A stretch of DNA of 64,000 bases from Tubulanus polymorphus (Eukaryota > Animalia > Nemertea), in contig NC_134030.1 of assembly GCF_964204645.1 (NCBI RefSeq), positions 20,420,210-20,484,209 on the forward strand. The letters run 5' to 3'. A program made the position numbers and the translations under genes. The notes beneath the pieces were generated by a model. That model worked only from the letters and a program-made list of their open reading frames with translations. It made no database searches and was not told the DNA's origin. Below are positions 4,534 through 51,807 of this stretch, one piece after another. Each line of letters starts with the position of its first letter. The stretch's first letter is position 1.

Positions 4534-7500
4534 TGCCCCAACGTAAGTCCAAGTTCAATAAATCAGCATAAAATTATTCACTGTCGATAAAAAGTGTTTC
4601 GTAATTTTCAGTAATGACAAAGGTAACATATTAGATACTAATGTATGATAGTGTAATTAACAGTAGTTATAATGATGATACTCAATGATCAAGAGAAGAC
4701 AAGCGATTGCAATAGGATATCAATTAATTCGATTTTCTAACTCAAACAGAAATCATAGGCTTCAGTTGATTCCAGTAAGAAGCAGTTTACTGTATTTGTT
4801 TGCTGTTACGAGGGTCTGCTAAAACCTGACTCAACTTAAGTTTCATAAACAAAGTTATAATGTACACCAAGTGTAGAATGCGGTTAAGTGGTGAGTATCG
4901 GTGACGGTGGAGAGTGTATGCCGGCGGAGATTGTAGTGATGTTGTAGAGTAATGATCGAGAGGATGATGCTGGAACTGTATAGTCATGATGATGTAGATG
5001 GCGTGATGGTGATAATGGCGGGTCTTTGAAATGCGTCAAAATGAAAATCCGAAACTGACAACCAACGTATTATATGGAATAATTTTCCTACACCCTTGCA
5101 CTATTACCCAGTATTCCAATAAATTGTCTACTCACCAATTCATTAGTGCCTTCTTGGACTATTTCGATCAGTTATCTTCTACTTATGCATATCATCTGCA
5201 GCAATCAGATCTCTCGGGTCGGGTTGATTTAATCAGCAGCATGCACATTTGATGGAAATCAGGTTCTGGGTAAGTGACGATGGTCTACAGTACCGGTACA
5301 CAATGTTGCAATAAAGTCTTGGCGAGAAACTGAGGAATGGCCTGCAAAAAATGACAATTTTAAAACATTACAACTGACATTATATCGACTCGACGATCGA
5401 ATGGTTGAATAAAGGTTTTTCTAGATACCTGAGTGAAAATTCGACTCGCGTGAAAATCCTGTAGCAAGTTGTAGAGTTATGTAAACCTGCACCGCAGAGA
5501 AGCGTCACTTCGCAACATCGCTAATCCCTAATGAAATCATGGACTCTAAGACAGCTGGATCATTTCATCTCACACCGGTCCCTTCGTTTTAGAGTCCATG
5601 ATGAAATCTAGCTAGTGTGGACGCGATATAGGACTATGTGAATGGTTTAATCCTCAGAACTGGTGCTATTCAAACCGATATATTCATTGATTATTGCATT
5701 CAAAAATGACAATGTATCCCTATGAACACAAAGTGAAGTGGTTCCGTCATAAAGTGATTCAACCGACAGTGGGAATACTCTAGGACACTGGTGCGACTAG
5801 CTGGATAATGCCATATTGACCCTGTACATATTTTACAGGAAAATTGTTCAAATACGTACAATATATACTGGAAGAGGCTAGACCTGACCCTGTTTGAGGC
5901 AGAGTCTTTGCAAAATCCTTGCAGCTCCATTGCAATCGATTATCCTCGGCATTTTAAATTCTCACAATTCTGGTGAATATCAGGCACGAAAATTATGAGA
6001 TCATTCAAATGATACAATTAGTTACTCCAACAAAGAATTTCAGTCGTTAGACCGCTGCAGAATTTCCCGAATATGTCATCTATTGGTGATGACTAATCAG
6101 AAATATTGGAGAAATGAATTCCAAAAATCCAGGCAGGTTAAACATAAAATAAATTTAAAAAAATATATGAGCTAGTAGAAAATTAGGTTTGGTAATCATG
6201 ATTTTTCCGGTTGAGAAATTTGAGGGTATTTGGTCCTAGATAGACACCCCTCTTAAATGCATTAATACAATTATTCAAGCTAGCCTGTAAAGAGCATTTT
6301 CAGTTGTTGTTATCGGGTTTCAAACAATTTAACTCTCCGATGGAAATTTCAAAACTTACACGTTACGTCCATTTTACTTTGATTTTCTATTCTATGTTTT
6401 AGTGTTATATTGTTGTACGTCGCCAAACGACACAGAATAGCATCTGCAAAGACCATAGCCCATGGTTCTAACTCAATTGAGGTGATAACTCCATTCTCCA
6501 TCTTAGTTGAGTGAACTTGCATTTTACTTGTGAAGAAAGTATGTCGATCATCGTCATCGTATCCGTTATTGAGCCATTCCACTGTCATAGCTACATTACC
6601 AATTTTACTAACAACTTTACAAGTGCAAGCTAAAGATTGGAATTGAGCCACTTTACACGGGTCTTCAAGTATGTTTATGCCTAGAGATAGAGATAGAGAT
6701 AGAGATCCATCGAAGTAGAAAATAATCAATGATTTAAAAAAATACATCTCAACTTGTAAGAAAAAACCTCTGATTTAGGCCTAGGCTACCATTATGTATC
6801 GTTGTCAAGATATCATCTGAATGTGAATCTTATTGAAACAGAAATGTGGTTTGATTTTGATTGTTCCTATAAAGGTTTTAAAGGCAATGTGTATCTATCA
6901 ATCTTCCCTCTTCATGGTGGGCGGAAGCAAGTTGACATTGGTGCGAAAAATTTGCGTCTGTTTCTTCAAGGAGTTCGGAGTACTTCCTCGGAGAAATGTT
7001 TCTAAATGGTTTCTAAATGGTTGTATTTAAAAGGCTCTTTGGGCTATGAGAATATAGTTTCATGATTCAAGATTGAGTCACTTTTATTAATGAAATTTGT
7101 AGCTTTTCTGTAGATCGCAAAACACGTTTTCGGTGATAGCTAAGGTTTTAAATAACATTCATTTGCTTGTCACAAATAAAGTGGTTCTTCAATAGATAAA
7201 ACAAAGTTTTCAGTTATTTTGCTCTCAATTAGCAGTACCGGCAATGTACTGACCAGATTTTACTCATGTAATTATAAATAAATCTGTTTAATTCTGCAAT
7301 TGATTGTAGTTATAATGGTAGATATAGCTTTATACTGTATGTAGTTTTAAAGGCTTTTGCAGCGAGTTTTATCCTCACGCTATCACAATTTAGAAATTTC
7401 ACCAGAAGTGGAAACCGAGATCTATTTCAACGGAATTCGAACCAAATGTTGACAACCATGGTCAACTCGATTATTTTGACTTGCTCCAGTTCATCATTGA

Positions 7501-7863
7501 AAAATTAATATGTTCAATAAATGCTCAATAAAAGCATACACTACATTAGTGTCACTGAAGGATTTTTACAGGAAAGATATAATATTAAGCCTCAGGAAAA
7601 TATTTCGTTGGAGATAGAATTAATTAAGATTACAAATATATTCTGAAGGCGATTTATTTTTCACTGCGTAATTGTTTCACTGCCCAATGACGAAATTGTT
7701 TTTTTGTCGAGTTATATTTTACTTATCAGATCAAGGCACGAGCATATTTGTTATCATATAGGGCAAGATACTCATATATATAAGACTGTGAAATTTTGTT
7801 TTTCATTACCCGTTTGGAATTCGAATGACCTCATTTCAATTGGTGCGCCATCGTAATAATATC

Positions 7864-8752
7864 ATGATGAATTTGTCATTGATGATCTTAGTGATTTTAC
7901 TGCTGGGGCCTGCGCTGACAAAGACAGGTAATGTTGAATTTATGAAATTATTTTAACTGTATCAATCTGTAATCTCAATGTGGGTTCGTTACATACCGTG
8001 AGCAATCTAAACACTCACTATTTGCTAGATAACTGATAAAGTTGGACCCGTGTGCCCGTTCATGTACTGTAAAATCCACTCAATCCAGATCCTAATGGAT
8101 CGAAGATTTTCGTGCGGATTATCCAAAATCCGGATTACTTGAATGGGGATTTGCATTCAAAAATATGACAAATCTTGCAGTTACGGTTGTTATTAGGACA
8201 TCGAGCTGCATATCTACATCGTGAAACGGTAAGGTTTTTAGAGGCGACTTCTCAAAATTGAATATCCGACTGGAGACAAGATGAAAAAGAATTCGAACTA
8301 ATTAAAGTGGACGCATAAGACGAAAATCCAGATAAATCCGATACGGATTAAGCGGATTTTACTGTAGTTCATTTTCAACAATGTCTCCGAAACGCATGCC
8401 AACACAATTGAAAAGCGAAAATTCATTCGCTCGTAAATCTAAAAATCTTTCAGAATTTCCTGTTTTCATCGATACTTACCCTGTAACAGTTGGACGGCCC
8501 GACATTAGATTCGAGGGGGTCGAGACACGGTACCTTTGTAGAACGATGGTTGGAAAATCGACGCCTACGTTGACGTTTCAACAGAGGAGACGAGATTCTG
8601 AATCATGGGGACCAGTTCTTGGGCATATTCGACTTCACAGATATGTTAAACAAAACGCATTTGTTTACGCGAAGTTAGAATTCAAGGCAGATTCCTAACT
8701 CCACAATGGAACGACTTTTAGATGTCGTGTAAAGGAAAATCCTACATATCCG
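7864..8752 (+). pseudogene. B1: truncated partial duplicate of the GPI-type Ig gene
   Basis: Signal exon 7864-7927 (MMNLSLMILVILLLGPALTKT, gt donor); Ig exon from 8454 has an in-frame TAA at 8696-8698 and is cut at ~8752, where the sequence restarts as a copy of ~7334 onward (tandem duplication breakpoint). Confidence 0.85.
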
Positions 8753-9289
8753 GTACTGTATGTAGTTTTAAAGGCTTTTGCAGCTAGTTTTATCCTCACG
8801 CTATCACAATTTAGAAATTTCACCAGAAGTGGAAACCGAGTTCTATTTCTGAACGGAATTGGAACCAAATTTTGACAACCATGGTCTACTCCATTATTTT
8901 GACTTGCTCCAGTTCATCGTAGAAAAATTGAAATGTCCAATAAATGCTCAGTAAGTGTTCAATAAAAAAACATATATTTCATTCATTGACACAGAAGGAA
9001 TATACGCCATAACATTGGAGAACGATTTCTGCATCCAATTTCATCAATAAGCGCGCGCAAAAGGAAAACCCGATATACATTCTGAAGGCGATTTATCTAA
9101 GTGACAAAAAGTTTTTTAATCGAAACATATTTTTATTGCCCTTATCAGATCTAAACACTAAACACCTTACCAGATTTAATAACATATCTGTTATCATATA
9201 GGGCAGAGTACTTATGTAAATACGACTGTGAAACGTACTTAATTATTTTCCGCTTGGAATTCAATCGGTGAATTTGTAATAACGTCATC

Positions 9290-11390
9290 ATGGGTTTCTC
9301 ATTGATGATCTTAGCGATTTTACTGCTGGGGCCTGCGCTGACAAATACAGGTAATGTTGAATTGATGGAATTCTTTTTAACTATAGGTATCTATCTGTAA
9401 TCCTCTGGGTTTTATCACATACCGTGAGCAATCTAAACACTCACTATTTGCTGGAGAGCAGATAAAGTTGAACCCATGTGCCCGTTTATGTACAGTAAAA
9501 TCCACTCAATCCGGATCCTAATGGATCGAAGATTTTCTTCCGAATTATCCGAAATCCGTATTACATGAATTGGGATTCAAAAGTATGACAATTCTGGAAG
9601 TTATGGTTGTTACTGGGACATTGAGCTACATATCTACATCGTGAAACGATAGGGTTTTTAGAGGCGACTTCTAAAAATTGAATATCCGACTGGAGACAAG
9701 ATGAAAAAAAATCGGACTTAATAAAGTGCATAAGACGAAAATCCAGATAAACTCGATACGGATTAAGCGGATTTTACTGTAGTTCATTTTCAGCAATGTC
9801 TCCGGTGAAGTCCTTAATGCATTGACGAAACGCATGCAAACACAATTGAAAAACGAAAACTCATTCGCTCATAACTCTAAATATCTTTCAGAATTTCATA
9901 TGTTCGTCGATACTTATCCTGTTACTGTTGGACGGCCGGACATTAGATTCGAGGGGGTCGAGACACGGTATCTTTGTAGAACGATGGTTGGAAAATCGAC
10001 GCCTACGTTGATATTTGAACAGAAGAGACGAGATTCTGAATCGTGGGGACCAGTTCTTGGAGATATGCGACTTCACAGATATGTCAAACAGAACGCACTT
10101 GTTTACGCCAAGTTACAATTCAAGGCAGATTCCAAACTTCACAATGGAACGACTTTTAGATGTCTTGCAAAGGAAAATCCTATAGATCCGGAACCTGCAC
10201 TATTTGACCCGATTGTAGTTCATAGTAAGTATCTGGGTATTCATAGCATCGATCATTTAAATATATAACTAATTTGAACTGCGCACCTTTATCTTTCCTG
10301 TGCCATATTAAATTCCCAAGTTGAGCTTTTCAAATGAAGTATGTGATGAAAAAAAGAAACAAGTCAAAATTAAGTTAATTTTTTCCCAGATAACTGGTTC
10401 AGACTAATCACGATTTCATATTCGTTAATCATAGAATTTGAGACGGATTTTTATTGAATCTAAAGAAAAGCGACTGATCTTTCATTACTTCGCTTACCTT
10501 TATATTATCTTGCCACGATCCTCAATTACCGCTTTTCTCAGTTGTATAGTTTTATCTAATTAACCATTATACAGTTAATAGCCGCCACTTTGATAAGGTT
10601 CCTTTGTCCCGTGTTGTTGTTTTTTTTCTCTAAAATGGTTTATTGTCTTGTGATAAAAGCGGTTTTTGAATATCTATCATATATTCAAGGACAGATAATT
10701 TGTTTCATGGTTGTTTTATCTCATTTTTCATTCGAGACCTCGCAACAGCTCGGTACTATAATGTATCTATAACTAGAAATGCAGAGACAAAACGACTAAC
10801 ATGTGACCCTCCAGCCAATGTTCAGAAAGAATCAAACGACAAATGGATTGTTTCGGTACTGATTGTGAACAGTATCAGAACTGATTATAGAGGGACGTGT
10901 TTGATAAATGGTAAACGCTTCATTGACATTCGCCGTCGTGATCTCGATCAATATGATGAACTATCAGGTTAGTTTCATTTATTACTAGGAATAAAATTCC
11001 CATTCGCTACGAGTATACTCGCTATATCTAACAAAATTAACAACCATTCATAGCAAAATGACTTCGATAAATGTCTGTCAGAAAAAGCTAGTCTGTGTTT
11101 GCCAACTCGTAATGTTGACATTATAATGAGATACTGATGTGGAAAGATCGTTGGTGGTTCCAGCAAAATATTTCAATCCTTATAATTTTCTATTGTCATT
11201 TTGTTTATTTTGCCTTTTATTCGAAGGGAAAAACAATGTCAATACCCATGATATCAATGCAAATGCAGTTAATGCAAATGGAACTAATGCAAATGGAGTT
11301 AATACTAACGGAGGATCTGGTAATGGAGTAAATGTTGCTGGTGGTGCATTCGGTGGACTCTTTGTATTTCTTTTGTATACTTTAATGTGA
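9290..11390 (+). CDS. B2: Ig-domain cell-surface protein, predicted GPI-anchored, ~258 aa, 4 exons
   Basis: Exons 9290-9350 (signal MGFSLMILAILLLGPALTNT), 9892-10224 (Ig; YLC...FRC), 10749(or 10737)-10967 (second Cys-pair domain), 11227-11390 (Asn/Gly linker + hydrophobic end GGAFGGLFVFLLYTLM*). All introns GT-AG and phase 1; 777 nt open. Confidence 0.8.
9493..9779. mobile_element. Tc1/mariner-type MITE in intron 1 of type B genes (copies also at ~8066-8365 and ~41276-41563)
   Basis: TIRs cagtaaaatccactcaatcc.../...ggattaagcggattttactg flanked by TA; same position in all three B copies. Confidence 0.75.
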
Positions 11391-12650: not shown

Positions 12651-13182
12651 TCAAATATCACATTTCTGTGTGAACTCACTGCCTTCTAAACTTCCATCGT
12701 CTTGTCTGCTATCCCTGGATTCCGTATCCATGGTTGTCGCTACATCTTTCTCCAATCTTGTCCCCTTCACGGCTTCCATATCCATGTAAGGAGTTGTATC
12801 TATGTCCTTCCCGGCTTCCATATCCATGTAAGGAGTTGTATCTATGCCCTTCCCGGCTTCCATATCCATGTAAGGAGTTGTATCTATGTTCTTCCCGGCT
12901 TCCATATCCATGTAAGGAGTTGTATCTATGCCCTTCGCTGTTTCCATATCCACGTAAGGAGTTATATCTTTTCCTGCTTCAAAGTTCTTGGCATTATGAA
13001 TCGGTACGCTATGTACTAATCCAGTTTCAGTATTTCTAACTGGATTTTTGTTTGAAACATTATCGGAATCACTGTCATCATCAAGCTCTTCGTAGATACT
13101 TAACATCTCGTTTGCTGTGTCATCAACTCGTTGCTGCGGTGTTGGAGTATCCACATGACCTTCACCGGACGGTCGATTACAT
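12651..13182 (-). CDS. A1 terminal exon: cytoplasmic tail (SIYEEL; YVDM + 4x YMDM)
   Basis: ORF 12651-13154 extended to a catttcag acceptor; 14-aa repeat [14 protein letters not shown]. Confidence 0.85.
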
Positions 13183-16100
13183 CTGAAATGGATAATTTAT
13201 TCTAGGATAGAATAGAAGCCAAACTTTTTACAAACTTTGATCGAAAAAGTGCATTAAGATCATATTTCGGTTGATTTGAATCCGTCATGTTATAATCAAA
13301 CATGGCCAAAGTGCTAAATTAACTCATTCATAATTATCAAACCTAGATCTTGATATCGTCCATCGCACAGGAGTTCCTTAAAATGTAGTCCCGATTTTTA
13401 CACGAATCCAAACTAGAAAACTAGGGATGTTAAAAGTAAGGTTCTTACATACCTATTGTAAAGTGAACTAGCAGAAAAAAACAACGAAGATTCCGAGAAA
13501 TCGCAAAAATATGATACGGCACAGATGTTGCGTATCTGCAAAATTGGAGCAGCGACGAACGGACGGACGGACGAACGCACGCACAAGGGTTTTTTATGGG
13601 TTATCGCTCGTCTTAACCGAGTTTAGACGTAGAACTAAAATAATGATTTGGAAATTTGCAGCTGTTATAACGGGATTCATGGTAGCGCTGTTCTTGTATT
13701 CATCAAATCTCTGGACATCTTAAAACGATGGGACTCAATGTATACGGATCTTTTCGATGGGGATAGATGGTAGATCATTACATTGGGGAATCGTGTATAA
13801 CAGAATGATTTCATACCTGCGCATGATGATTTCAGCGATTATAATGATTAAAATGCACCCAGTAACCACACTGCTGATGTACAGTATCAAACTGGTCTGG
13901 TCCGTTGTGGTCCGATCAGTTGGAGTGCGGTCAGTTTTGGTCCGATCAGTTGGGGTCCGGTCAGTTGTGGCCCGATCAGTGGTAGCCCGTTCAGTTATTT
14001 TACGATCGGTTGTGGTCTTGTTAGTTACTGTGGTGGTCTTATGAATTTTTGACCGTACAGGTGGGCTCTTGTAACGTGGACCCAGCGGAGCCTAAAAATG
14101 AACAAAACTCTGAGAATCATTACAATTTCAAAAGGTATAATAATGATTATCAATTGATTTAATTAGTCACCATTCATTCAGTTTGCTTAGGCTCATCTAT
14201 CTGTCTATCACCTTACTATATCAAAACAACAAGGGGTGAAACGGCTTCGCTTTTTCCTAGTTTAATTTGACTCTGGATCCAGTCCCACAGTTCTGTGGGT
14301 TTAATTTGAATCTGAATCCAGTTCCACAGTTGTGCGGGTTTAATTTGAATCTGAATCCAGTTCCACAGTTGTGCGGGTTTGATTTGACTCTGGATCCAGT
14401 TCCACAGTTCTGTGGGTTTAATTTGAATCTGAATCCAGTTCCACAGTTGTGCGGGTTTAATTTGACTCTGGATCCAGTTCCACAGTTGCGTGGGTTTAAT
14501 TTGACTCTGAATCCAGTTCCACAGTTGTGTGGGTTTAATTTGACTCTGGATCCAGTTCCACAGTTGTAGGGTTTAATTTGACTCTGGATCCAGTTCCACA
14601 GTTGTAGGGTTTAATTTGACTCTGGATCCAGTTCCACAGTTGTGCGGGTTTAATTTGAACCTGAATCCAGTTCCACAGTTGTGCGGGTTTGATTTGACTC
14701 TGAATCCAGTTCCACAGTTGTGCGGGTTTAATTTGAATCTGGATCCAGTTCCACAGTTCTGTGGGTTTAATTTGAATCTGAATCCAGTTCCACAGTTCTG
14801 TGGGTTTAATTTGACTCTGGATCCAGTTCCACAGTTGCGTGGGTTTAATTTGACTCTGAATCCAGTTCCACAGTTGGATGGGGTTAATCTGAATCTGCAC
14901 CCAGTTCTATAGTTGTGTGGGTTTAATTTGACTCTGGATCCAGTTCCACAGTTGTGGGGTTTAATTTGACTCTGGATCCAGTTCCACAGTTGGGTGGGGT
15001 TAATCTGAATCTGCACCCAGTTCTACAGCGGAGAGCGTTTAACACGACTCTGGATCCAGTTCTAAATTTGTCTTGGTTAAATATGACTCTTCAGCTTATA
15101 TCCAGATACTCACCGGTGCAGGGTCCAGATTAGAATGATCTGAAACAAAGTGTAACCAGCAGAATTAACTTTCAGCGTTTCTGGGTTTGATGCGACGTGT
15201 ATAGCGTTGTACAGAAGGAATAGTTACAGGTATTCCCTCGAGTTAAAAGTAACCAACAAGCAAAAATAAATAAATAACATTTCTAAAAATTCACCAGAGA
15301 TGGATCCAGCATTATTCAAGAAAAAGGTGAACTATTTATTCTAACGGAAGAATTGCGTGCACTGTAGTGCGGACAAATTTGGTGGCTACTTATTGATGGA
15401 TGTCGGTGGATTCGACACATTTTTAGCAATCTATTCAAAACACTATTTTGTCCAGGGGCTCATTATTCAAGCCGATAGACATAACTCATCACCATGAATT
15501 GCTGAATGACGTTAGTATAGATTCGCCAGTGACATAAACGGTTGTAAAAGAATAGGACTAGATAAATCAGCTGTCATTCACGAGGAAGTTCAAGGAATAC
15601 ACAATGCAACTATCATTAGCGTTTTGAATAGGTGTTATCTTATATTACCTTATCTCACCAATCAAAAATCTATTTTTGCAACAACTATCTCTCTAATTTG
15701 TTTATTTTACTTGCAAATTACATATATAATTCTAGAAGGTGGCCGACTAAACCGATGGACCAGGTGTCAAAATTTTCTATTCAAACAAGACATTAATTCA
15801 TCGGGCACATATCATCGTATTTAATAAAGTTATTATCTTGTCTTTGCTTTAACCATTTAGTCCACCATGTGCCGTTTGCCGACTACACTTTATACCAGAA
15901 TAATGTAAAATGGCAAAATTTTGACGAGCTACCCACATCCCAGCCAGTGCTTACAGATACAATTCCAACTGGCGATAAATACCCCATAGATAGATATCCC
16001 TGGTAAAAATCTTTCCAAATTCCAGATTTTTTATGGCACTTAGATAACGAGTAAATTGACAATAATTATGTTTTCCAAGAGGGTTATGTTAAGACGACTG

Positions 16101-19100: not shown

Positions 19101-22100
19101 CAGTTACGTTCTGTGGCACAATGGGTAAATCACTGGATTACTACTGGATTTTTTTTTCGTTTGGTTTTAATCCCAATATTGCAAGTCTGAGCGTCAACGT
19201 ACTCACATACGGCTAACCTGTAGAAATCACCGTACAGTCACGTACAGGTAACAACAACGTTTGAAGTATTAAGTGAGTACCATGAGTACAATAAGCCTAC
19301 CATGCCTATGTACTACAAACACAACGTTTTACCTCTCGTCCGCCCTACAGTGATGTTACTAATAACTGGTGCCATTATAACATGGATAGGATTTGGTCAG
19401 GACTAGCCTAAAGTCTAATTCAGTCTGTACTAATTCACTCGATAGGCCTATTTTTAAGACAATACAGTGAAGTATTCACACGCAGAAAGGCTAATTGATT
19501 TGAGCCATGTGATTAAATTTTACTCAGGCCTTCTCTGACCTGCTGACATTAATAGTCAAACCTAGATCCAAAACGTTCATGTGGTCACGGCTTGTATACC
19601 AGAAATCATTGTAGGCCTGTACATTTTGCTGTTCGTAGGTTTGGTATACCGATTTCTCCATTTTTGACTGATAAGTGTACAGTATAGCGTACGCATTATA
19701 TAATTGTTCCAATGGGAATAGGGCCTATTGATTGTGATACCTGGAACTAGCTCGGAATAGTCACCAAACACAAACGATATTGAAATAATTTAAAGCTTGA
19801 TTTATTGTTGAAACGAGTCAAAGAGAAAAGAGCTCAGAGAGAGAACGAGAGCCAAAGAGAAAGAGAGCGAGGAATAGAGAGACATGAATTTATATTGCTC
19901 CACTAGACAATGGCCAGACACGTCAGTAGGACAAAGTCCGAATGACCAGTGCCGAGTGAAGTGGACGGTTGGGATTAAAGAGATAAAGACAATATTGCTT
20001 TTGAAATGATTAACATACGGAAATATAGTATAACATGTTTGTAATGAAAACTGAATAATGACTTAGATATTAAATAAATACTATCCTCTGTATCATATGC
20101 CCCACCTTCACTTGATTCGTCCTCGAATCTCAAAATTAAACTATACCGACGAAAAAACTATTGACAACGAGTGAAAAACCACTACTCGATAAAAGATCCA
20201 AACATGAAAAGTAACCATATATACTGCATGATATTCTTCCCTTTAAACACGCAATTATCAGTGGGATGAAAACCTGGAAGACACTTAAATTACGCGGATG
20301 ACACTAACGACTTATCATTGTAGCAAGAAGACGTAGACACACGGAAAAAATGTATACAGGTCCACCACTCAACAATTAAGCGTAATCAGGAGAAATAAAC
20401 AAAGATAGTACATGATTCATATGAATGGAATCTAACCCATATAAAGATAGGCGTATAGGTTGTCAATAATAGTAATGTGGTCAGTACGGCAGTAAATATC
20501 ATTGTCACTTCTAAAATAAATATCAAAGTCCAATAAGTGGACTGCACGCACAAAAATAAATGAAAACTATGGCGCGATAGTAACTAAGTAAGTATCAAGT
20601 TCCACATACACGATAATAAGTATATTAAATATTTCTAATAAAAGGCGGGCTGACACAGAGGCACGCGTTTTGTAAAATAAAAAAAAACATTAGCAACAGC
20701 CGATCCTCTTTGTTCTGTGTTGGGGAGAGGACTCAGAAAACCCCAAACGGTATCAACCATACATTAGCCCTTTTTCCTTGACGAGAGTGGGTTAACTCCC
20801 GGGTTATTTCTGTGCTGGAGGAACCACTCCAGAGAAAAAGCAAAGAGTGTTAGCCAAATATAGTTATGCAAAGGCTAGCATTTGATATAGTACACAGCGC
20901 ACACTTTGTTAGTCTCCGAGACATCAGGTTTAGACATCTATGCCGGACAACAGGCTTCGATACAGGTTTGTGGACGTCTCTCCATCGGATGTTCTTGAGA
21001 CTACAGGTTTGTGGACGGTTCGACATGACGTGTGTTGTTGGTTATTCGACATTGGGCTTACCACCTATGTTGACGCAGGTGGGGCCAGCAATGTCTAGTT
21101 GTCACGTTCACATCTACAGTCCATCTCGTAGTGAGTCTGACAAAGGTCAGCTTGGTGCGATAACTTCTTTAGATAGAGTTGATGACTTCTTACGATTTTT
21201 CATCGCTGTCTCCGGTGTAAACAATGTGGAGTACCGATACGTCTGGAAGAACTTGTTTGTGGAAGAGGCCTCGTATTCGAAGACCGCATTGTGGCACTTG
21301 GCGTCTGTGGTTTTCCTCAGAGACTATTTAGGGTGTGACTTCTGACGGAGATGTGACATCGACCTGAGACTATATCGCATGCGAGTCATTTACATAGATT
21401 ATAGATCAAATTGATATATTAAACTACCTCCATGCTTTCCCATATCAGACGCGCAAATGGATGATACCGATATTAGTTAGGAAAAGATAGTTAGCTTAAC
21501 GATAGCATAAAGCAAAAAAAAAAAAAACAAAAACAAGAAAAACTTAAGCTGTTGCACCTGCAAAAGAACGTTTTGGATTAGACAAAATAAAACATTGTAG
21601 GAAGCTCTCTCATAAAATTTTGTTATAGAATTTGAAAAATATGAGTAGTTTGATAAAAGGATATCTCTGAGCTAGTGTCGCAGCAGTAATGGATATTCAC
21701 GATCTGCAAAAGACTTTTGTGAGTACGTGTAACTAATGATTATTAAGGTTTAGTGGTTGGGTAAACTTAATCAAGTGTCGGAAGTGCAATCATTTTACCA
21801 TCCGTGAATGAAAGATATAGATAAGTATCATAATAGTTAGAGTTAATAATTTTTATTAATTGGATGTACGCGCACCATGACATTCTGGTTAATTCAGGTA
21901 AGTCGTGCCGCCGAGAATTTGCTATAATTTGACTGTTTCCCCAATAGGTCGAGAGATAAGGACTTAAAAGCTTGACCTGACTTGTTTTCCTTAGACCATT
22001 GGGGGCGTGATTGATATAATAGTGATGTGGACAGTCAGGAAGATTTAAAATAGTTATATTAACGCTATCGCTGATGTTAGCCAGTGAGAGGACTAAAGAA

Positions 22101-25100
22101 CAGCCGCTAGTACGTAACGGATATACCATTCGGAATATATTCTTTAAAATTAATAAAGACAACCGAAATAACACATAGCCGGCTAACAACAAAACGATGA
22201 AGTGTACGTTCTCCTGAATATGCGAAGAAATTAATTCAAAAGAGGATACAAAATCGGTTGTAGCATTGTCGGTAGCCGGATTGCTTTGTTCGTCAGGTGG
22301 ATAAAAGGCTAGTGTTTCATTTATCGTTATTTTAAATGAATTTGCCGACGGATTGCTGGTTGTTGCGAGAGGTGCAAACAAAGTTGCCGCTCTTCTTCGA
22401 TTAGTACAGAATAGATACAGCGAGAAAGTCAAAGCTAACAAACTTGAGATTAATGATGTAGAGGCAATAATTTGTGAGGAATCAATACTAAAAGAACTTT
22501 TATGCCACGGTGAGGCGAAGTTAGACCCAAAGGAACTCTACTGGGTGCAAGAACAGGCGTTACTTGGCCGTAAACAGGGACCGAATGAGCCGGTGAAATC
22601 ATACTCGGAGGACCTCACCTCTAAATTTGCGAAATTGAAAACACCTCCTCAGACGCGATTGCAAGTCTTTTTGTTAGGGTTACGAACGGATCTAAAGAAA
22701 TTTGTTTTGACTCAACAACCTCGGTCAGTTGATGAGGCTGTTAATCAGGCCCTTACGGCAGAGATTATTACGCAGCTAGATCCTCCTGCAACACACTCAG
22801 TTGCCGCCCTTAAAGGCCAGGAGCAGGATAAAATGGAATTGTTGATTAACGAAATAAAATCTCTACGAGCTGACCTCACTTCTCAATCAAATTTCCAAGC
22901 AAACAATAGGCCGGCATCAGAAATTCCTTACTGTAATTACTGTCAGAGATCAGGTCATTCTGAGCGTACTTGTGATCGCAGGTACAATTCAAGAGGTCAG
23001 CAGTCTAGTTATCGGGGTCAAGGGTTGCGTAGGCAAAATTATTCGAGGAATAATTACCGTCGGTTTAATCCTGATAACCCGACAAACAATCGAAACTATA
23101 CACATAGGGGTAATTACGATGTGATGGAATATGTCCATCAGTCGTTTTCTATGTTGTAACTGGAGGGTGCTGCCCTCTCTCTCTCGAAAATACAGAACAA
23201 TAGGTGATTGTGTTAATATCTTTTGTCCGCCTTTTTACTGGTTTTTGGGCTCGCAGAGTCGATATTTGGAGGAAACTTCTACTGTGGAACAGGCAGAATA
23301 GGACCTCGTTACATCTGGTGGCAGCGTAGTGGGATTTGATTGTGAAAAAACCCGTTGAAATTGAGTTGAAGCGGTGAACACGTTTTTCTCCGTTTAGTCT
23401 GTGTAAATTACGGTTACTTTTTGTGTGTACTTAACGTATTTTTTTTTTACCTACTTCGTAATTCCTAGTACATATTTAGTATTATTTAAGTGCCTGTTTC
23501 CCCTACATTTATTTGCGGTCCTGTATTTTCTGTGTCATTTATATAAAAGAAACCCTAATGCGAAACAACAACTACGCCGTGTTAGATGTCTACTGTATCC
23601 AGAGCCGAGAAGTTTGGAGCTTAATATACTATTATAAGGACTATAATTAAATTTGCGTAGATATTTTGACTATATATTCCTGTTCAAATAGGAGTTTGAA
23701 CAAGTTGAAGGGGGTAGTGTGATGGAATATGTCCATCAGTCGTTTTCTATGTTGTAACTGGAGGGTGCTGCCCTCTCTCTCTCGAAAATACAGAACAATA
23801 GGTGATTGTGTTAATATCTTTTGTCCGCCTTTTTTACTGGTTTTTGGGCTCGCAGAGTCGATATTTGGAGGAAACTTCTACTGTGGAACAGGCAGAATAG
23901 GACCTCGTTACAACGACAGGCAGCAGTTTCCCAACTCTACCTATCACACGAATCAGGGAAATTAGGCACGGCTTGTATCAACGTGGGTGATAACAGCCAA
24001 CCACATGCACATAACCCCACGAACCATTTACCAACATCCCCTCCTAACATTAATTTCGATACTTTTGCAGATGATTCCGCTAATTCTGACGTTTTTAGCA
24101 GTAAATTTCATATTGATTTTTGTGACTGTTTGCTCAGAATATTTTATGTTTTCATGGCGTTTTCCCTACTTATATTCTTTTTATGCAAAGACATCGTGTG
24201 TAGAGCCACTCCATTTCTTATCAATGTTTTCATCGTGCTATTCAAACTTGTACAACGGTCAGCACGTGGCAGTATAACCATATTTGCTAAGTCTCGTGTC
24301 TTGGGTGAGTCTCTCTATTGAATTATTTGTTATCATATTAGCCTATTTATGAACGGCATCAGTTTCCCGAAATGTGATGAAAAATGTAAACAGTCGCCGA
24401 TAGTGAGCGAAAATAGTCAAAAGTCTTATAAAATTTTAGCATCGGTCGCCAATTCAATTCCCGGAAAAGTTAGTGGAACAAATGTTACTATTTTAATTGA
24501 TAGTGGTAGTGACTTGACAGTCGTTAGTAAATCTCTGTTTGATAAATTAGACAGTTGCGAGCTAATTGACCCCGATAAAAGTATCAATGCCCATTCAGCT
24601 AATGGATCTAATATTCGAATGTTGGGCGTCACTGAATTAAAACTTAATATTGGGCTCTGTGATTATGATATAACTGCACATGTAGCGGCAGATTTGGCAT
24701 ACGACGTTATTTTAGGTATGGACGTTTTGATACCACAGGGAGTTATTATTGATTTAGGGGAAGGTACCGTACAATTCCCTGGTAGCGGTCCTCTGATATT
24801 ACAGAAGCAATACGATCTTGTAAATGATGCCCAACTGCGTGTCAAAGAAACCACTGTAGTTCCACCTTTTTCAGAAATAGTCATACCGGCAAAAATATCA
24901 CAATCCGTTTCAAATGGGACCGAATGCATAATTGAACCGAGTCTCAAATTACACAGAACAAATTTGATTGGTGCTAAAGTCATTGCTTTAGTCAAGAAGA
25001 ACTCAGTTCCATTTCGTATTTGCAATCCTACCGTTAAACCCGTGAAACTTTATAGAAACACAACACTTGGTCATCTATCTACAGGATCGTTTGACATCAT

Positions 25101-28100
25101 AGATACAGATGTACAAAACGAATCAGCAAGTATACCGGGACCCAACATTTGTAATCTTAATTGTCAGCCTGGGAACCTGAAGTATGAAGACCCACCTGAC
25201 GTCAACCTAGGTAAATCGCAACTTTCAGGCTCAGAGAAACAGCGTCTGCGTAAACCTCTCTTGAAGTACCGTGACGTTTTCGCCAATAGTGATGACGAAC
25301 TGGGTCATTCAACGTTAATAGAACATCATATCGATGTCCAAGGCCACCCTCCTATCAGGCAACGAGCCTATCGACGGACCCCAGACATGAGAAAAATCGA
25401 GGAGGAGGAAGTAGATAAGATGGCACGTGCCGGGATTATTCGAGAATCTAACTCGCCATGGAGTAGCCCGGTCGTGCTAGTTAAAAAGAAAAATGGCCAG
25501 ACTAGGTTCTGCGTAGACTATCGGAAGGTCAACGAGGTCACTCGGAAGGATTCATTCCCGATGCCTCGTTGTGACGATATAATCGACAGTTTAGGTAGTT
25601 CCCAGCCAAAATTCTTTCATCACTAGATTTGCGATCTGGTTATTGGCAATTAGAGGTTGACGAAGATTCGAAGCCAATCACTGCGTTTACCTGTAGTCGT
25701 GGCCTGTTTGAATTTAATTAATTCAGTTGGAAGATATGTCTAATTTACCTCGACGACGTTGTAGTATTTTCCAATTCATTTGAAGAACATTTGGAACATT
25801 TAGAGCAAGTTTTCCAACGGCTAAGAGAAGTTGGACTGACTCTGAAGCCGTCCAAATGCAACTTCGCTATGGCAAGCATTCTTTACTTAGGACACGTTCT
25901 CAGCGCCAAGGGAGTCGAACCCGATCCTGAAAAGTGCAAGGCAATTTTGGAGTACCCAATTCCAAGAACGTTGAAAGATCTAAGATCATTTGTAGGCCTG
26001 GCTACGTATTACAGGAAATTCATTCCCAGATTTAGCGAAATATGCTCACCTCTATATGCCATGACCAAGAAAAATGCAAAATTTGATTGGACACCTGAAT
26101 GTGACAAAGCCTTTAACACATTAAAACAACGACTCACGACTCCCCCCGTATTAGCATTTCCCGACTTTAATCTACCCTTTGAACTGCACACAGATGCCAG
26201 TGCAACAGCAATAGGGCTGGTATTGTGTCAGCGTGTGGATAATAATGAACGCGTTATTGCGTATGGGGGCCGGAACCTCCTCCCTAGGGAAAGAAATTGG
26301 GACACAACCCAACGGGAGATGGCTGCTGTCATGGAAGGCATCAAGAAGTTCAAGCCCTACCTCCACGGTCGTAAGTTCCGTGTCGTTACAGACCACAATG
26401 CACTCCGTTGGTTAATGACATTAAAAGAACCTCAAGGACGATTATGTCATTGGGCATTAGCATTGCAAGAATACGACATGGAGATTGTGCATCGTGCTGG
26501 TCGGGTACACAATAACGCGGATGCCTTATCACGTCGAAACTATATCAACACCATTGATTCAAATCAGGTTTTGAACATTTCAAATGAAGATAGGGTTGAG
26601 TATCCCTCTGTGTGCGTTTGATAAATGAGATATTGTCTGTCTTTGGTTGATACTCAACCCTATCTCATTTATCAAACGCACACAGAGGGATGACCCTTTT
26701 TCTTTAGATTTGATAAAGTACTTGAATGATAGAGAATTACCCGAAGACAAGAAGGCCGCTAGAAACATCATCCTCCAGTCTGAATTTTTCTGTCTACGCG
26801 AACACGGATTATTATGGCGCAAGTCCAAATTGAACCGATCAAAACATCCGGGACAAATTCTGTTTCAATTATATATCCCTCCATCATTGAGAGAGGACGT
26901 TCTCATAGCTTATCATGACGATGTTTTGGCTGGTCACTTTGGTTTTGATAAGACCTACGATAAAATACGAACGAAATACTACTGGCGAGGCATGTACGAA
27001 GATATAGCACACTGGGTCAGGTCATGTGTATTGTGCAATACCAAGAAAGTACCGAAACACAAGCTCACGGCACCCCAGATCCCTTTACCTGCAGTAGATT
27101 CTCCGTTCGATCGAATCGCAATTGATTGCGTAGGGCCAATCCATCGCAGTAGGAAAGGGAACCAATATATTGTAGTCATAACCGACTATTCGACACGTTG
27201 GGCCGAAGCCTTTGCCACCAAATCTATTTCTGCAACTGTGATTGCTCGCATTCTGTTTGATGAAATTCTATGTACCCACGGCGCACCACTCACAATTAAT
27301 TTTGAGTGACAGAGACCTTTCTGTCTTCTCTTGTAAGAGAACTATGTGAATTATGCAATACTACTCAGATCCGTACTTCCGCTTATCACCCATGTACAGA
27401 TGGACTTACTGAAAAGTACAATGGCACTTTAGTGCAAGGACTGAGCATGTTTTGCAATTCAAAACAGACTAACTGGGATGAATTCATCAAGCCACTCCTT
27501 CATGCCTATAGAACTACCATCGTCAAAAGCACGGGCTACACACCATTTTTTCTCATGCACGGTCGTGAAGCTAGGACACCAATAGACACCTCACTCCTAC
27601 CTCCTGAACATGAATTCTACTCAGCTGATGAATATGTCCAAGAAATGGGTAGAAAGTTGCAAGAAGCTCGCATTTGGGCCAAAACAAATCTGGAAAATAC
27701 TCAGGTGATCGCGAAATTGAAACATGATCAACGACACAAGGTCACAGATCCTGTCTACCAGGAAGGCGACTTAGTTTGGCTTCGGACTCCAAAGACAATA
27801 AAAGGGCTATCTAAGAAGTTGCTTCATCCATATTCTGGACCATTCATTATCTTCAAGAAAACATCGCCCGTTAATTATCTCCTTAAAACACGAGCTGGTA
27901 GAACCCTTAAATCTCCCGTGCACGCCAACAGACTTAAAATGCACACTGACCCTAATGCTCGACGTGTCGGAATTCAGAAATTTGATCGTGATTTGCAAGT
28001 TAAAGTACAACCCCAAATACCCAGGAAACAAGCACAGGTTGTCCCTCAACAACAGGGAGGTAGCGATAGCAATAAACCCAAGGATTCCGAGCCAACGGCC

Positions 28101-31100
28101 GCATCCGCGAATAATCCAACACCACCAACTACAACTGAGCACACAATCACAAAGAATCTTCCCGATCCCGAACTTAAATCCCGGAACAAAAAGCAATCAG
28201 ATGTCTTTCCCGTCGAATGCCTATTAAAATCACGGAAATCGAAAGGTCGCTTACAGTACCTAGTACAATGGGCTGGTAACTATCCTCCCTCATGGGAGCC
28301 ATCAAGAAACGTATCTAAAGACCTAATTGAAAAATTCCGGCTGGATAAAAGACAATGATCTTATCGTGTCGTTTTCCATCTATTTTTCAGACAATGATGA
28401 TTTATCCAATATTTTTCATACTGATGGTGATGGGTACAGGGACCGGTGCTGCGAGGGAAAGGTTGATACTCCGGAAAGATTACGGTGTCTTGTTTACGCA
28501 ACAGGGCCAGATCGACAACGCTGGGTCAGCATGGAGCCACACGTATGCTCTACCTTGGCTGCGTTATCCCCTGCCGCACATGACACCACCTTCCTGCCCG
28601 GGTTCTCCACCAATGATACCTAGAACTAGCTCGGAATAGTCACCAAACACAAACGATATTGAAATAATTTAAAGCTTGATTTATTGTTGAAACGAGTCAA
28701 AGAGAAAAGAGCTAAGAGAGAGAACGAGAGCCAAAGAGAAAGAGAGCGAGGAATAGAGAGACATGAATTTATATTGCTCCACTAGACAATGGCCAGACAC
28801 GTCAGTAGGACAAAGTCCGAATGACCAGTGCCGAGTGAAGTGGACGGTTGGGATTAAAGAGATAAAGACAATATTGCTTTTGATATGATTAACATACGGA
28901 AATATAGTATAACATGTTTGTAATGAAAACTGAATAATGACTTAGATATTAAATAAATACTATCCTCTGTATCAATTGGGCTTATTATTTCCTGCTTTAG
29001 AATACTGAAATAAGCCCAACGTTCATTGAAATATCCAACAACGGTGAAAGTTTGATTACTGTATACATGTACTGTAGGTTTTCATGTTGTATGAATATTT
29101 TGCAGTTCAAATGGGTATGATGCTGATTCCAATGTACAATAAACACATGAAGTTAAATGGTCAAGGACAGTCAACACCAAGATATCTCTCTTCGACCGAT
29201 GTTGTACCATAGAAGATCTGATTCTTTCAACTCAAGCAAAGTGATTCTACACGATCGACATAACACTGGAATAGGTTTGTAATGACTAACAGTTCATTTC
29301 ATTTAGTCCTATGCATTTTTTAGCCAATTTGGCTTTGATTGTAATTGAAACTCTAGTAAGACGATTTGAAAAAACACAAGTTATGCTTGATTCTCATATT
29401 CAAATTTAATTCAAATTTGTTCTATTACATCATATTTACAAAGCGTATCATTGGTTCATACAGTAATAAAAATTAGGACAGAACAAATATTATTATAGAA
29501 TTTTCAAAAAGGCAATGAAGTTCTATAACTAAATGAACACTATTTTTTAGCTCGGCTGTGACCGAAGGTCAGCGGAGCTATTGGGTTAGGGGTAAGCCGT
29601 CATCGTCCGTCCGTTCGTTCGTCTGTCAACTTTTTCTTCAAATCGCTACTAGTCGTGCAGTTTTAATCAGATCAATTCCAAATTTGGTATCAGTGTTCTA
29701 TGGACCTAGCCCTAAAAAGTTACTGAGCCATTTTTGATTCTTCTCCCAGAGGGCGCCTTATGGGGTTGGAGTTCCTATTTCTTCAAATCGCTACTCGTCC
29801 TACAGTTATAATCAGATCAATTCCGAATTTGGTGTGAATGTTCTATGGACCACGGCCTATGAAGTTACAGAGCCATTTTTTGATTCGTCCACCAGGGGGT
29901 GCCCCTGGGGGTGGAGTTTCTATTTCTTCAAAATTGCTATTAGTCATACAGATTTAAACAGATCAAGTTCAAATTTGGTATGAATGTTCTATGGACCAAT
30001 GCCTACAAAGTACAGAGCCCTTTTTGGATTTGGCCAAAAGGGAGCACCCCTGGGTATGCAGCTTCCATTTCTTCAAATCACACAGCGGAGCTATATAAGC
30101 CGATAGGCTCCTTGTCTCATAACTCAGATCGAGAGTGACTCTCCCGTTTATTAGGAAACACACGCAACCAGTGGAATAGGTTTGATTTACACACATGTTG
30201 CAGGTATCAATTGTTAATCACTATAGAATTTATAATCCATAAAAGCCAAAATCAGCCGGAAACCCAGACCAGATCAATTCATAATTTATTGATTGAATCT
30301 ACACTACAATATATGTATTTATTCAAATATTTCAATAAAAATATTAACTTCTTCAATCTATTCTAAATCATAATACGTTCTTATCTGTGAATTCACTCAA
30401 TCTATCGACTCAACAGGTGCTTAAGATGGGTTCTTAATAGGACAGATCCATTTTTAAGCGTGGTGATAATACAGTATCATGATGTTTGAATGCCAAAATA
30501 AATGCCTGGTCAAATAAATTAATATTTGTTGATTATACGTCCGCGTATGTTCGGTTTCAAAGCTGAATCACATTTGACGTTTACACAGTGGTTGCATATT
30601 AGGTTCGAATCTGTCAATGCATTTTATACTATGTATCGGTATTTCAATTTACTACAATTCCCATCATTCTGAATGGCTTTGCAGAAAACACGTCATCGCT
30701 GCTTCGCAGCTATATTTAAAATTACTGTTTTCGAACTAACTTGTTCCTATGGAAAATGAAATGGATTGGTGAATCTCATTCTTATCAAACCGAAGGGGAA
30801 TTATTACCGACATCCCAGGCATTCAAGGTTAGAGCAAATGACGACTCAATTTTAACTAATTTCTTACCGGTATCACGAACTACGATCAGATCAAGCTGAA
30901 CAGGTTCCGGATTTGTAGGTGTTTCCTTAACAAGACATCTAAATGATGATCCATTGTGAAGTTTGAAATCTGCCTTGAATGTCAGATTAGCGTAAACAAA
31001 TACGTTCTGTTTGATATATCTGTGAAGTCGTTTATCTCCAAGAACTGGTCCCCACGATTCTGAACCGCGTCTCCTCTGTTCAAACATCAACGTAGGCGTC

Positions 31101-31543
31101 GATTTGTCAGTCCTTGCTCTACACTTATAAAGCACATTCTCCCCTTGTTTCTTCTTGTCTGGCTGACCACTGAGATCAGGAAGCAGGTGAATAAATCGAT
31201 GGAAACCTGAAACATAGTGTCTCATTTAATCTGCATGTTATTTGAGAGATTCTCGCGGTTTCGCGTAAAAGTATAGAATATGGATTATTATAAGAACCAG
31301 AAATCGTCATGATTTGAACGTCGACATTTTTACAGCCAATTGTGAATAAATAAGTCAAAGGAAATAAGTACGTATGTAAAAGCGTTGTTTAATAGAAAGG
31401 CCATGTAACGACTTAGAAAGTTAGATGTTTTCGAGTTTGAGTAACTTACTTCTCTTTCCCTTCACTCCAGACAATTCTGCATTGTGTACGTTTCCCAGTT
31501 GCAGTAACACGATGCAGATCAGTACAGACCAGTTCCTCAACAT
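12651..31543 (-). CDS. A1: type I membrane Ig receptor with mucin stalk, ITIM-like motif and 5 tandem YxxM motifs, ~421 aa, 5 exons
   Basis: Exons 31543-31450, 31206-30868, 15139-15114, 14091-13817, 13182-12651; GT-AG introns, phases 1,1,0,2; 1266 nt open; same exon order as A2 and A3. Intron 2 is ~15.7 kb and filled with TEs. Confidence 0.75.
13817..14091 (-). CDS. A1 exon 4: Thr-rich stalk + transmembrane helix
   Basis: tttttag acceptor and gtatga donor; translates APLGPRY...(TTDR)n...[24 protein letters not shown]. Confidence 0.85.
14262..15062. repeat. Intronic 39-bp minisatellite, ~20 copies (ctctggatccagttccacagttgtgtgggtttaatttga)
   Basis: Directly visible; shorter, more degenerate arrays lie in the same intron of A2 (~36700-36945) and A3 (~60210-60510). 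Confidence 0.95.
15114..15139 (-). CDS. A1 26-nt micro-exon (DHSNLDPAP)
   Basis: tttcag/gtgagt boundaries; same 26-nt length in A2 (36653-36678) and A3 (60165-60190); converts phase 1 to phase 0 as needed. Confidence 0.8.
18165..18548 (-). repeat. Tandem ~55-60-bp units, each with a hairpin agggttttctgt...acagaaaaccct; probably an amplified end of a Helentron/HINE-like element
   Basis: About 7 units; a single copy of the same hairpin with similar following sequence lies in the opposite orientation at ~16860-16950. Confidence 0.7.
21767..22500 (-). pseudogene. C-terminal fragment of a membrane-type ORF belonging to the minus-strand LTR shell
   Basis: 224-aa ORF with two hydrophobic stretches, upstream of the minus-strand PPT; its 5' part is replaced by the plus-strand gag. 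Confidence 0.5.
22510..23965 (+). pseudogene. gag: Gypsy gag, 5'-truncated and interrupted by a TRIM
   Basis: Q-G-x-x-E-x-V...F-x-x-G-L retrotransposon gag motif; CCHC knuckle CNYCQRSGHSERTC; removing the TRIM rejoins NY-DRQQFP...QGN*. Confidence 0.85.
23120..23912 (+). mobile_element. TRIM (terminal-repeat retrotransposon in miniature)
   Basis: LTRs 23120-23313 and 23718-23912 (TG...CA; differ by one T); PBS tggtggcagcg at 23316; PPT aagttgaagggggtag; 4-bp TSD acga; ~400-bp non-coding interior. Confidence 0.92.
24349..28358 (+). pseudogene. pol: Gypsy pol (protease, RT, RNase H, integrase, chromodomain), disrupted by frameshifts and deletions
   Basis: ILIDSGS; RFCVDYRKVN; IYLDD; TDASA/VTDH/ADALSR; HHCC zinc finger and IDCVGP; C-terminal YLVQWAG...SWEP chromodomain; split over 4 ORFs; the MPFGL segment of RT is deleted near 25718. 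Confidence 0.95.
28394..28600 (+). pseudogene. 5' fragment of an env-like third ORF
   Basis: Polypyrimidine-cag acceptor just before the ATG; signal peptide MMIYPIFFILMVMGTG; then RKDYGVLF...WSHTYALPW; cut off at the antisense PBS/LTR. Confidence 0.55.
29543..30115 (+). mobile_element. Non-autonomous Helentron-associated (HINE/DINE-1-like) element
   Basis: T-run; 5' subTIR + inverted copy (agctcggctgtg...cagcggagct); (gtcc/gttc) microsatellite; three 145-bp core repeats; 3' subTIR cacagcggagct and short hairpin agccgataggct. Confidence 0.8.
30868..31206 (-). CDS. A1 exon 2: Ig domain (339 nt, phase 1-1)
   Basis: YKC...FRC cysteine pair with 61 residues between; tttcag/gtaaga boundaries. Confidence 0.85.
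31450..31543 (-). CDS. A1 exon 1: signal peptide
   Basis: [31 protein letters not shown] followed by a gtaagt donor; near-identical to A2 and A3 exon 1. Confidence 0.85.
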
Positions 31544-38590: not shown

Positions 38591-39589
38591 GAAGGCAGTG
38601 AGTTCACACAGAAATGTGATATTTAACTTTAAATCTTACGCTCTTTTACACTATTTGGAATTTCATCACGAACAATCGCGACTTAGATATAAGAATACAT
38701 AAAAATAATCAAAATGTATTGTGATAATTCGTAATTTTGTCATATAAAGCTTTTTTATACAAGAATCCAATTCATCGGAAAAATGTCTTAAGAACAGAAA
38801 AAGTATATGTTATTTGATATACATGTTTTCCTTCCTTATTTTGCCTATGACGGTTATTTCTTAGTTTCCCAGCTCGATTTGATTACTCATCTAACCTCAA
38901 GGTAGAACGACTGTAAGCGGCTAGCAACTAATAGTGCCGGGATTGTTTTCGCTGGATCGAAATAGTTCACGACGGCTTGGAAGCTGAAGTATGTACTAAG
39001 CCGGTTTTGCGATAGATGGCGCATGGAAACTAGGTATCATCACACAAGCACATATCGACAGTGACGGTTCGTCTGAAGTAAGAACAAAAAATGGAGTCAC
39101 AAGGCAACCCAGTTTCACGAAAAAGTTTAAGCCTAAAACGGTTAAGTTTGAAATGTTGTCCTCATTGAAAAAATGAAGTACCCAATAGCAATTACACCAA
39201 AAATTTGAGTTAAACTTTTGTGAAACTGGGCTCTGGCCGAAGAAATCACCACAACACATTAAGATATATTTAAAAATCATAAATTGCAAATCAAAGATTT
39301 TACGATGGCTGCAGGGAATGTCAGAGACAGGCGACCTTAAGTCGATAAAAAAAATTAGTTCCGCTTTTGCTCCGCGCAAAAACAAAAAAAAAACAAATAT
39401 TTATTTTTGCGCGGTGCAAAAGCAAATAAATAGCGCCAAAAAACGAAGCGATTTGTTCTTGCGCGTTAAATGTTTGTCTATCGCGGTAATATTTGTTTTT
39501 GCGCGTTTTTGTGGATGATGAAAAAAAAATATTGCCATGTCCCGAATCTGCCACCATACATTCACCTTGCCACGCGGGTTTGCGGGCTT

Positions 39590-45843: not shown

Positions 45844-45868
45844 TCAAACACCATGACTTGTTATTTGT

Positions 45869-50971: not shown

Positions 50972-51807
50972 TAAAGCAGTTTACATACTGGGAATTGAAG
51001 ATCTGGAACCCGACGAATATCGCGAGAAACACTAGTCTTCACGGTATCATTATACATACATACTGGTCAATACGCGATCACTGCTTGAGTTTGTGTCAGA
51101 AGAGCAACAGTATAAACTGGTTTGCGCGGCGAGATATAATCAACGACATTGGTGAATGCTACAAGAAACTCGATAATGAATGGATTAAGACAAGTCAGGT
51201 GATTAAATATGATGATAACACGCAGTTGATCAGTGGTGATACGAACACATACAATACAGAGGAGGGTCTGATTATTGATACTGGTGTTAGTGCGTAACGT
51301 TTGGGTAATATCTTAGTCAATATTCACAAATCGTATTCATCCTTAAAACATCTATCTCTCAAATCTCCGCTACGTGAGCTCGATAGAAATACAACCAGAG
51401 AGCTGATAAACATCATACCGAAGTCTGAAAACCTTATATCTTGAAGAAGTAATATTCGATAATGATTTATCGGTTCGGAGGAATTGAAAGATTTTAACAC
51501 CGCGTTAAAATCTTCAGACATCGAAACAATTCAGTTCGGACTGCCCGTACTGCGCGAACTGACTGAACTGCGCGAACTAACGACTGATCAACGTGCAGCA
51601 ATCAGTGATAGCGTCGGTTCAATGCGGAAACTAAGGCGTCTTATCATTAACGGACGTCATTTACAACCGAACCGCGTTCTAGCTCATCTACCGCGACTGA
51701 CTGTATTATCAATAGTGTTGTGTTCAGAAGCTGATGTTGACGCACTTGTTCGGTATCTATCATCAGATGCGGTAAATCAGCTGCGGGAAGTCAGTATTTA
51801 TAGCTAG
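50972..51807 (+). pseudogene. Decayed leucine-rich-repeat-like coding fragment
   Basis: LKHLSL, LRRLII, LTVLSI, LREVSI LxxLxL-type units in broken frames. Confidence 0.45.

Follow-up and report, generated by a model that had tools for sequence, protein, structure and literature searches.

A 42-bp coding repeat builds YxxM arrays in the tails of a single-Ig receptor family in the ribbon worm Tubulanus polymorphus

Three receptor genes with repeat-built tails

The window, that is, the whole 64,000-nucleotide stretch of DNA analysed here, contains three paralogous genes, A1, A2 and A3, which RefSeq annotates as uncharacterized (Table 1). Alignment of the paralogues gave a shared plan of five exons (a signal exon, a 113-codon domain exon, a 26-nt micro-exon, an exon for the stalk and the transmembrane (TM) helix, and a tail exon), and the encoded receptors comprise a signal peptide, one Ig-fold domain, a Thr-rich stalk, a TM helix and an acidic tail, without a kinase domain. 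The combination of signal peptide, single TM segment and cytoplasmic tail found in all three is that of an Ig superfamily receptor. In A1, canonical splice sites with matching phases yield a protein of 421 amino acids, the same as the RefSeq model of LOC141906754. The first YxxM lies about 71–75 residues into the acidic tail, downstream of a single SIYEEL motif, which is probably a Src-SH2-type docking site. This motif fits [SIVL]xYxx[IVL] only in A1–A3 and in A4, a paralogue that lies 33 kb outside the window; its place is taken by YEDP or YDEL in other paralogues. ITAM spacing (YxxL/I x6–12 YxxL/I) was absent from the 17 tails examined, which rules out an ITAM receptor.

The second intron of A1, about 16 kb long, holds an LTR retrotransposon of the Ty3/Gypsy type with a chromodomain; its 361-bp LTRs are 99% identical and its pol is split over several open frames. 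The stop codon of A2 lies 12 codons before that of A1, and the tails of A3 and A4 end early, the remainder of the A1/A2-type tail end lying unused about 330 bp downstream.

Table 1. Positions of genes, repeats and mobile elements in the window
Feature	Position	Strand	Remarks
A1 exon 1	31450-31543	-	Signal peptide
A1 exon 2	30868-31206	-	Single Ig-fold domain
A1 exon 3	15114-15139	-	26-nt micro-exon, restores phase
A1 exon 4	13817-14091	-	Thr-rich stalk with 15-bp coding repeat; TM helix
A1 exon 5	12651-13182	-	Entire cytoplasmic tail to stop codon; RefSeq XP model, LOC141906754
A1 SIYEEL	13083-13100	-	Fits ITIM consensus; resembles Src-SH2 site pYEEI
A1 42-bp coding minisatellite	12763-12969	-	4.9 copies, 5 YxxM (TRF, translation)
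A1 15-bp coding stalk repeat	13893-14017		8.3 copies (TRF)
A1 39-bp intronic, non-coding minisatellite	14260-15090		21 copies (TRF)
A1 intron 2 LTR retrotransposon	19735-28974		Ty3/Gypsy type
A2 (LOC141906755)	33670-38590	+	Exons 33670-33763, 34675-35013, 36653-36678, 37062-37303, 38191-38590
A2 SIYEEL	38273-38290	+	
A2 42-bp array	38392-38513	+	2.9 copies, 3 YxxM (TRF, translation)
A2 15-bp coding stalk repeat	37111-37225		7.7 copies (TRF)
A2 39-bp intronic, non-coding minisatellite	36718-36941		About 6 copies (TRF)
A3 (LOC141907547)	58082-62845	+	Exons 58082-58175, 59513-59850, 60165-60190, 60616-60917, 62431-62845
A3 SIYEEL	62513-62530	+	
A3 42-bp array	62632-62836	+	4.9 copies, 5 YxxM, one of them YMNM (TRF, translation)
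A3 15-bp coding stalk repeat	60672-60841		11.3 copies (TRF)
A3 39-bp intronic, non-coding minisatellite	60210-60512		About 5 copies or more (TRF)
Unused remainder of tail end	62839-63260		A1/A2 type
B1, tail-less gene	7825-11387	+	
Additional copy of B1 Ig exon	8417-8752	+	In-frame stop
B2, tail-less gene	About 39000-41300	-	
Broken Ig-TM-NACHT-LRR fragment	6361-6678	-	
Broken Ig-TM-NACHT-LRR fragment	51013-51837	+	
LINE	44518-48790		

The ectodomain model is an Ig sandwich (pLDDT 79) with the B–F cysteines and C-strand Trp of the superfamily, and its Y-x-C, W and R-C positions are invariant. It aligned with Rst D2 at Z 11.5 (r.m.s.d. 2.2 over 97 residues), with BTLA, ICOS, VNAR and VEGFR domains within about 1.5 Z of that match (Ig domains, Z 10–11.5); at 8–17% identity, these structural matches are generic Ig. 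For homology searches we used the spliced model exon by exon, and the RefSeq proteins for searches with whole proteins. Pfam gave no significant family for single exons, including the Ig exon alone, and a word-based search with the Ig exon returned a blank that its length limits make uninformative. The true hits of the protein searches were all uncharacterized RefSeq proteins of the nemertean T. polymorphus itself, a taxon with which the Hox genes (Lox5, Lox2, Lox4 and Post2 types) accord; these searches found no relatives in other species and detected no sequence homology indicative of orthology to CD300, TIM, CD28 or Alr.

A lineage-specific receptor family

About 40 tail exons occur in the genome, together with at least 65 related Ig exons; most are on two contigs, one of them that of the window. 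Each tail exon carries from 1 to 19 YxxM motifs; several paralogues retain just one, and others have 12 or 19. The modules YMNP, TYLQL and YSYATV are added in other tails. The same Ig domain recurs in proteins that are tail-less, secreted or of the Ig-TM-NACHT-LRR type, suggesting a recognition cluster that has diversified. We conclude that A1–A3 belong to a family that is specific to this lineage, has expanded in tandem and consists of single-Ig type I membrane receptors lacking a catalytic domain. To our knowledge, nemertean immune receptors are almost undescribed. Our literature searches found no paper on the A1–A3 family and none describing a YxxM array built of repeats in an invertebrate Ig receptor, and on insulin-receptor tail extensions they returned nothing relevant.

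Splicing and reading frame of the tail exon

The tail exon is coding in the YxxM frame, as in the first-pass annotation, on the evidence of RefSeq models, the phases of the exons, one RNA splice joint and an omega of about 0.5, and the tail is cytoplasmic. The splice joint comes from the RNA-like run X4, in which 60917 is joined to 62431 (GT..AG), exactly the predicted TM-to-tail splice and in the YxxM frame; a second, near-identical contig begins at the acceptor of the TM exon. Because the X4 contigs for the tail and the 3′ UTR have the sequence variants of A4, this joint is evidence at the level of the subfamily rather than of a single gene. Run X1 has even coverage over the whole of A3 and behaves like DNA; the contigs of runs X2 and X3 extend past exon ends. 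Both X2 and X3 read through the donor of the TM exon (60893-61059) at exon depth, which, if these runs are RNA, would represent a tail-less isoform without YxxM. None of the assembled contigs listed spans the array, on which the paralogues pile up.

The reference sequence of A3 is without one base at 59585, which shifts the frame of the Ig exon, and the RefSeq model is truncated there. The base is present in the public runs X1 and X2; an intact A3 allele therefore exists, and the lack of the base in the reference is either an assembly error or a null allele.

The 42-bp unit and its YxxM motifs

TRF and translation bore out the earlier observation that a 42-bp unit in the last exons of A1, A2 and A3 gives five, three and five YxxM motifs, respectively. 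The arrays are tandem, in a translated exon and of a unit length that is a multiple of three, as a coding VNTR would be, and the core pattern of the unit has 13 matches (5 + 3 + 5) against 0.02 expected by chance. Both other frames of the repeat contain stops on the coding strand, leaving the YxxM frame as the only open one. The motifs read YVDM and four YMDM in A1, where five of the six tail tyrosines sit in YxxM; YMDM, YVDM and YMDM in A2; and three YMDM, one YMNM and one YIDM in A3. The single YMNM, correctly picked out at the start, corresponds to the motif of CD28.

We then collected 146 units from 22 genes among the roughly 40 tails, picked by their flanking bases only (the control gave 0 hits). 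That Tyr and Met at +3 never vary was true of the 13 units in the window but not of the family, in which YxxM is kept in 105 of 146 units: the Tyr position is Y in 123, F in 17, H in 4 and another residue in 2, and Met at +3 is present in 126 (86%), its substitutes often being V, I, L or F. As family units lose either residue, the invariance is local and not absolute. Nor are the two positions uniquely fixed in the window, where T−2, E+4 and K+7 are invariant as well (5 of the 14 positions); the extra constraint on Tyr and Met is real but modest. Of the 34 units of one paralogue, about half have F instead of Y, and units with YMNV, YMNI or H for Y occur in others. All but one of the YxxM units (104 of 105) read Y-[MIV]-x-M, and Asn occupies +2 in 28 of the 123 Tyr-bearing units. 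The family tails carry the cytoplasmic Y-[MIVE]-x-M motif of p85-recruiting receptors. Paralogue L008 (C6:22.785 Mb) has a 676-amino-acid tail frame with a 32-amino-acid period and with Y and F units in alternation.

Selection on the repeat unit

The 102 distinct units were joined in minimum spanning trees, on which changes were counted. The count gave an omega of 0.50 with a synonymous excess (p = 2e-6), and resampling of genes gave 0.48 (0.40–0.56) versus a neutral expectation of 0.78–1.0 with transition bias. Amino-acid change at Tyr and Met+3 ran at 0.65 (0.45–0.87) of the rate elsewhere, the pooled test being borderline (p = 0.056), and Met-to-Ile made up 9 of 14 changes at +1 and 2 of 10 at +3 (p = 0.047). 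Because the units are not independent, the selection and +1/+3 figures are to be read as indications. They indicate that the 42-bp repeat evolves under purifying selection, with omega about 0.5, and that the pattern of Met at +1 versus +3 may be the one that a reader of Y-[MIV]-x-M would require; Y-[MIV]-x-M is the p85 optimum. At the level of exons, omega between A1–A3 is 0.34–0.79 outside the nearly identical signal exon.

A predicted dock for p85

In vertebrates, PI3K is recruited by the YxxM motif. The genome encodes one p85 gene with RhoGAP-like, nSH2, iSH2 and cSH2 parts. The phosphate-binding Arg motif is kept in both of its SH2 domains, and two intact SH2 domains are present in the same organism as the arrays. 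In the nSH2, the residues at human K379, I381, F392, Y416 and L420, which line the +1 to +3 pocket, are conserved, and the cSH2 is also close to its human counterpart. The peptide GpYMDMS serves as a standard probe and ligand for p85 (PMC6275495), and bisphosphorylated motifs give higher PI3K binding affinity and activation (PMC3355962). We lean, by a little, towards the prediction that the A1–A3 tail is a multivalent p85 dock, combining the receptor family with Src priming, bivalent p85 and class IA PI3K.

In the mechanism that we propose, the disordered acidic tail would act as a phosphotyrosine scaffold. Ligand binding would cluster the receptors; a non-receptor tyrosine kinase, probably of the Src type and docked on the proximal YEEL, would phosphorylate the array; adjacent pYxxM sites, 14 residues apart, would engage both SH2 domains of p85; and bound p85 would bring class IA PI3K to the membrane for PIP3 production. 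The PI3K output may act in phagocytosis, in motility or in survival, with defence or self/non-self recognition as the probable setting. Several points count against a multivalent p85 dock: the constraint on Tyr and Met+3 is borderline and comes from a spanning-tree count of non-independent units, F replaces Y in about half the units of one paralogue and YMNV, YMNI and H appear elsewhere, several paralogues have a single YxxM, and Pro at −1 is not typical of known p85 sites or of Src substrates.

Copy number: tuning or drift

As the first-pass annotation had it, copy number differs between paralogues through repeat gain or loss (2.9–4.9 copies in A1–A3; 1–19 YxxM in the family). Units 2–4 of A1 differ by 1–2 bases, and unit distances within genes are below those between genes, which indicates repeat turnover; slippage or unequal crossover would change the number of units. 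The further proposal, that copy number might tune the PI3K signal, is plausible. Variation in copy number alone does not imply tuning, because the 15-bp stalk repeat and the 39-bp intron repeat, the latter with a very high genomic copy number, vary equally, and for the same reason tuning and drift above two copies are equally likely.

Helicobacter pylori CagA has a similar layout, with a tandem phosphotyrosine segment, EPIYA-C, whose copy number sets the affinity for tandem SH2 domains: the gain is 100-fold from one to two copies, and KD is 123 nM with three and 77.8 nM with five (PMC5408210). CagA is a bacterial injected protein with a 34-amino-acid unit that engages SHP2 and for which allelic variation has been shown, whereas A1–A3 are host receptors with a 14-amino-acid unit and variation known between paralogues only. 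By analogy with the CagA affinities, A2 (three copies) and A1 and A3 (five) would differ little in affinity, and the contrast between single-copy and multi-copy paralogues may matter more than that between three and five. The main functional step would probably be from one site to two or more, three versus five copies making little difference to affinity and more to the number of p85 molecules bound.

The main rival to tuning, which we give a little under an even chance, holds that one or two YxxM motifs are functional and that the number above this drifts in repeat-prone genes, as a by-product and not a tuner. It is compatible with p85 binding, and it gains from the like variation of the stalk and intron repeats, from the sign of turnover, from the CagA gain falling mostly between one and two copies (PMC5408210) and from the persistence of degenerate units. 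However, selection acts across units and not on a single unit, and arrays of 12–19 mostly intact motifs have been kept in frame, both of which speak for more than drift. The most far-reaching version of tuning, a coding minisatellite acting as an evolvable rheostat of immune-type receptors, with 1–19 p85 docks that differ between paralogues and alleles, are selected and give graded PI3K output as a host-side counterpart of CagA EPIYA-C, we consider unlikely.

Other readings of the tyrosines

The tyrosines might instead be used mainly by partners other than p85, either unphosphorylated, as YxxPhi sorting signals for AP-2/AP-1, or as phosphosites for other SH2 proteins, with SHP2-type proteins (through T-x-Y), Grb2 (through YxN) and the Src family as candidates. 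In favour of this reading, YxxM fits the YxxPhi signal too, the residues replacing Met at +3 are often V, I, L or F and those replacing Tyr are mostly F, Asn is present at +2 in a share of the units, SH2 matches in the genome number at least 46, and YEEL, YEDP, TYLQL and YSYATV motifs accompany the arrays in the tails. Nevertheless, the prevalence of Met at +3 and the greater tolerance of Ile at +1 than at +3 are more in keeping with p85 than with AP-2, it is hard to see a use for as many as 19 sorting signals, and the tails examined lack ITAM spacing of YxxL/I; we regard use mainly by such partners as doubtful. It is very improbable that the repeat is a mere low-complexity spacer of a disordered tail, or that the copies are pseudogenes, with YxxM coincidental: the frameshift in the reference A3, the retroelement in the A1 intron and nearby gene fragments would suit such a reading, but the missing A3 base is carried by X1 and X2, omega is below 1 in the units and in most comparisons of Ig, stalk and tail exons, and nearly all A1 tail tyrosines are in YxxM.

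Comparison with known systems

The nearest functional analogues of A1–A3 would be single-Ig receptors of the CD300f/CD28 type, here with an IRS-like tail and with a gene cluster arranged as in Hydractinia Alr; A1–A3 are detectably homologous to none of these. CD300f, TIM and CD28–ICOS share with them one Ig domain, a stalk, a TM helix and a kinase-less tail with Tyr motifs; they differ in having one or two YxxM in unique sequence, and no sequence homology to A1–A3 was found. Of these, CD300f has inhibitory motifs in addition to binding p85, according to references listed in PMC7247439. Alr likewise comprises about 40 genes and pseudogenes in a cluster, with unusual Ig domains, a separate exon for each domain, a TM helix and Tyr-motif tails (10.1101/2022.03.04.482883). 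Its tails, by contrast, carry ITAM and ITIM motifs, YxxM being unmentioned in the same source, and no homology was detected; A1–A3 have no known role in allorecognition.

IRS-1, Gab and BCAP, and PDGFR-beta at Y740/Y751, have multiple YxxM motifs bound by both SH2 domains of p85, a mode of binding that is predicted for the multiple YxxM of A1–A3. In p130Cas, a Src-docking site is paired with a repeated YxxP substrate array. These scaffolds are cytosolic adaptors or kinases whose motifs lie in old, diverged sequence and are fixed in number, whereas in A1–A3 it is the receptor itself that bears the motifs, within a young DNA minisatellite. The components, namely Ig receptor, YxxM and coding repeats, are all known already. 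If p85 binding holds, the family would offer a natural titration series for valency versus PI3K output, with 1–19 near-identical sites at a fixed 14-residue spacing, and an invertebrate would be diversifying the signalling end of a receptor besides its recognition end.

Related genes and mobile elements nearby

Proteins P0012 and P0015 have the same Ig ectodomain and TM helix with another cytoplasmic region, of 700–1000 amino acids, without a Pfam match. P0003 and P0014, encoded on the contig of the window but outside it, join the same Ig domain in the ectodomain to TM, NACHT and LRR parts, and broken fragments of one such gene lie in the window (Table 1). Membrane-bound NLRs have been reported in sponges (PMC12909245). 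Besides the Ig domain of the A genes, the two tail-less B genes encode one further domain, a stalk rich in Asn and Gly and a hydrophobic, GPI-like end; the B genes lie tail to tail with A1 and A2, forming an inverted duplicated A+B pair. Their products are possible ligands, decoys or partners of the A receptors. B2 looks frameshifted near 41000, and the additional copy of the B1 Ig exon contains an in-frame stop. The LINE between A2 and A3 has a long ORF1 (zinc knuckle, GDSL esterase-like) and an ORF2 (endonuclease, RT).
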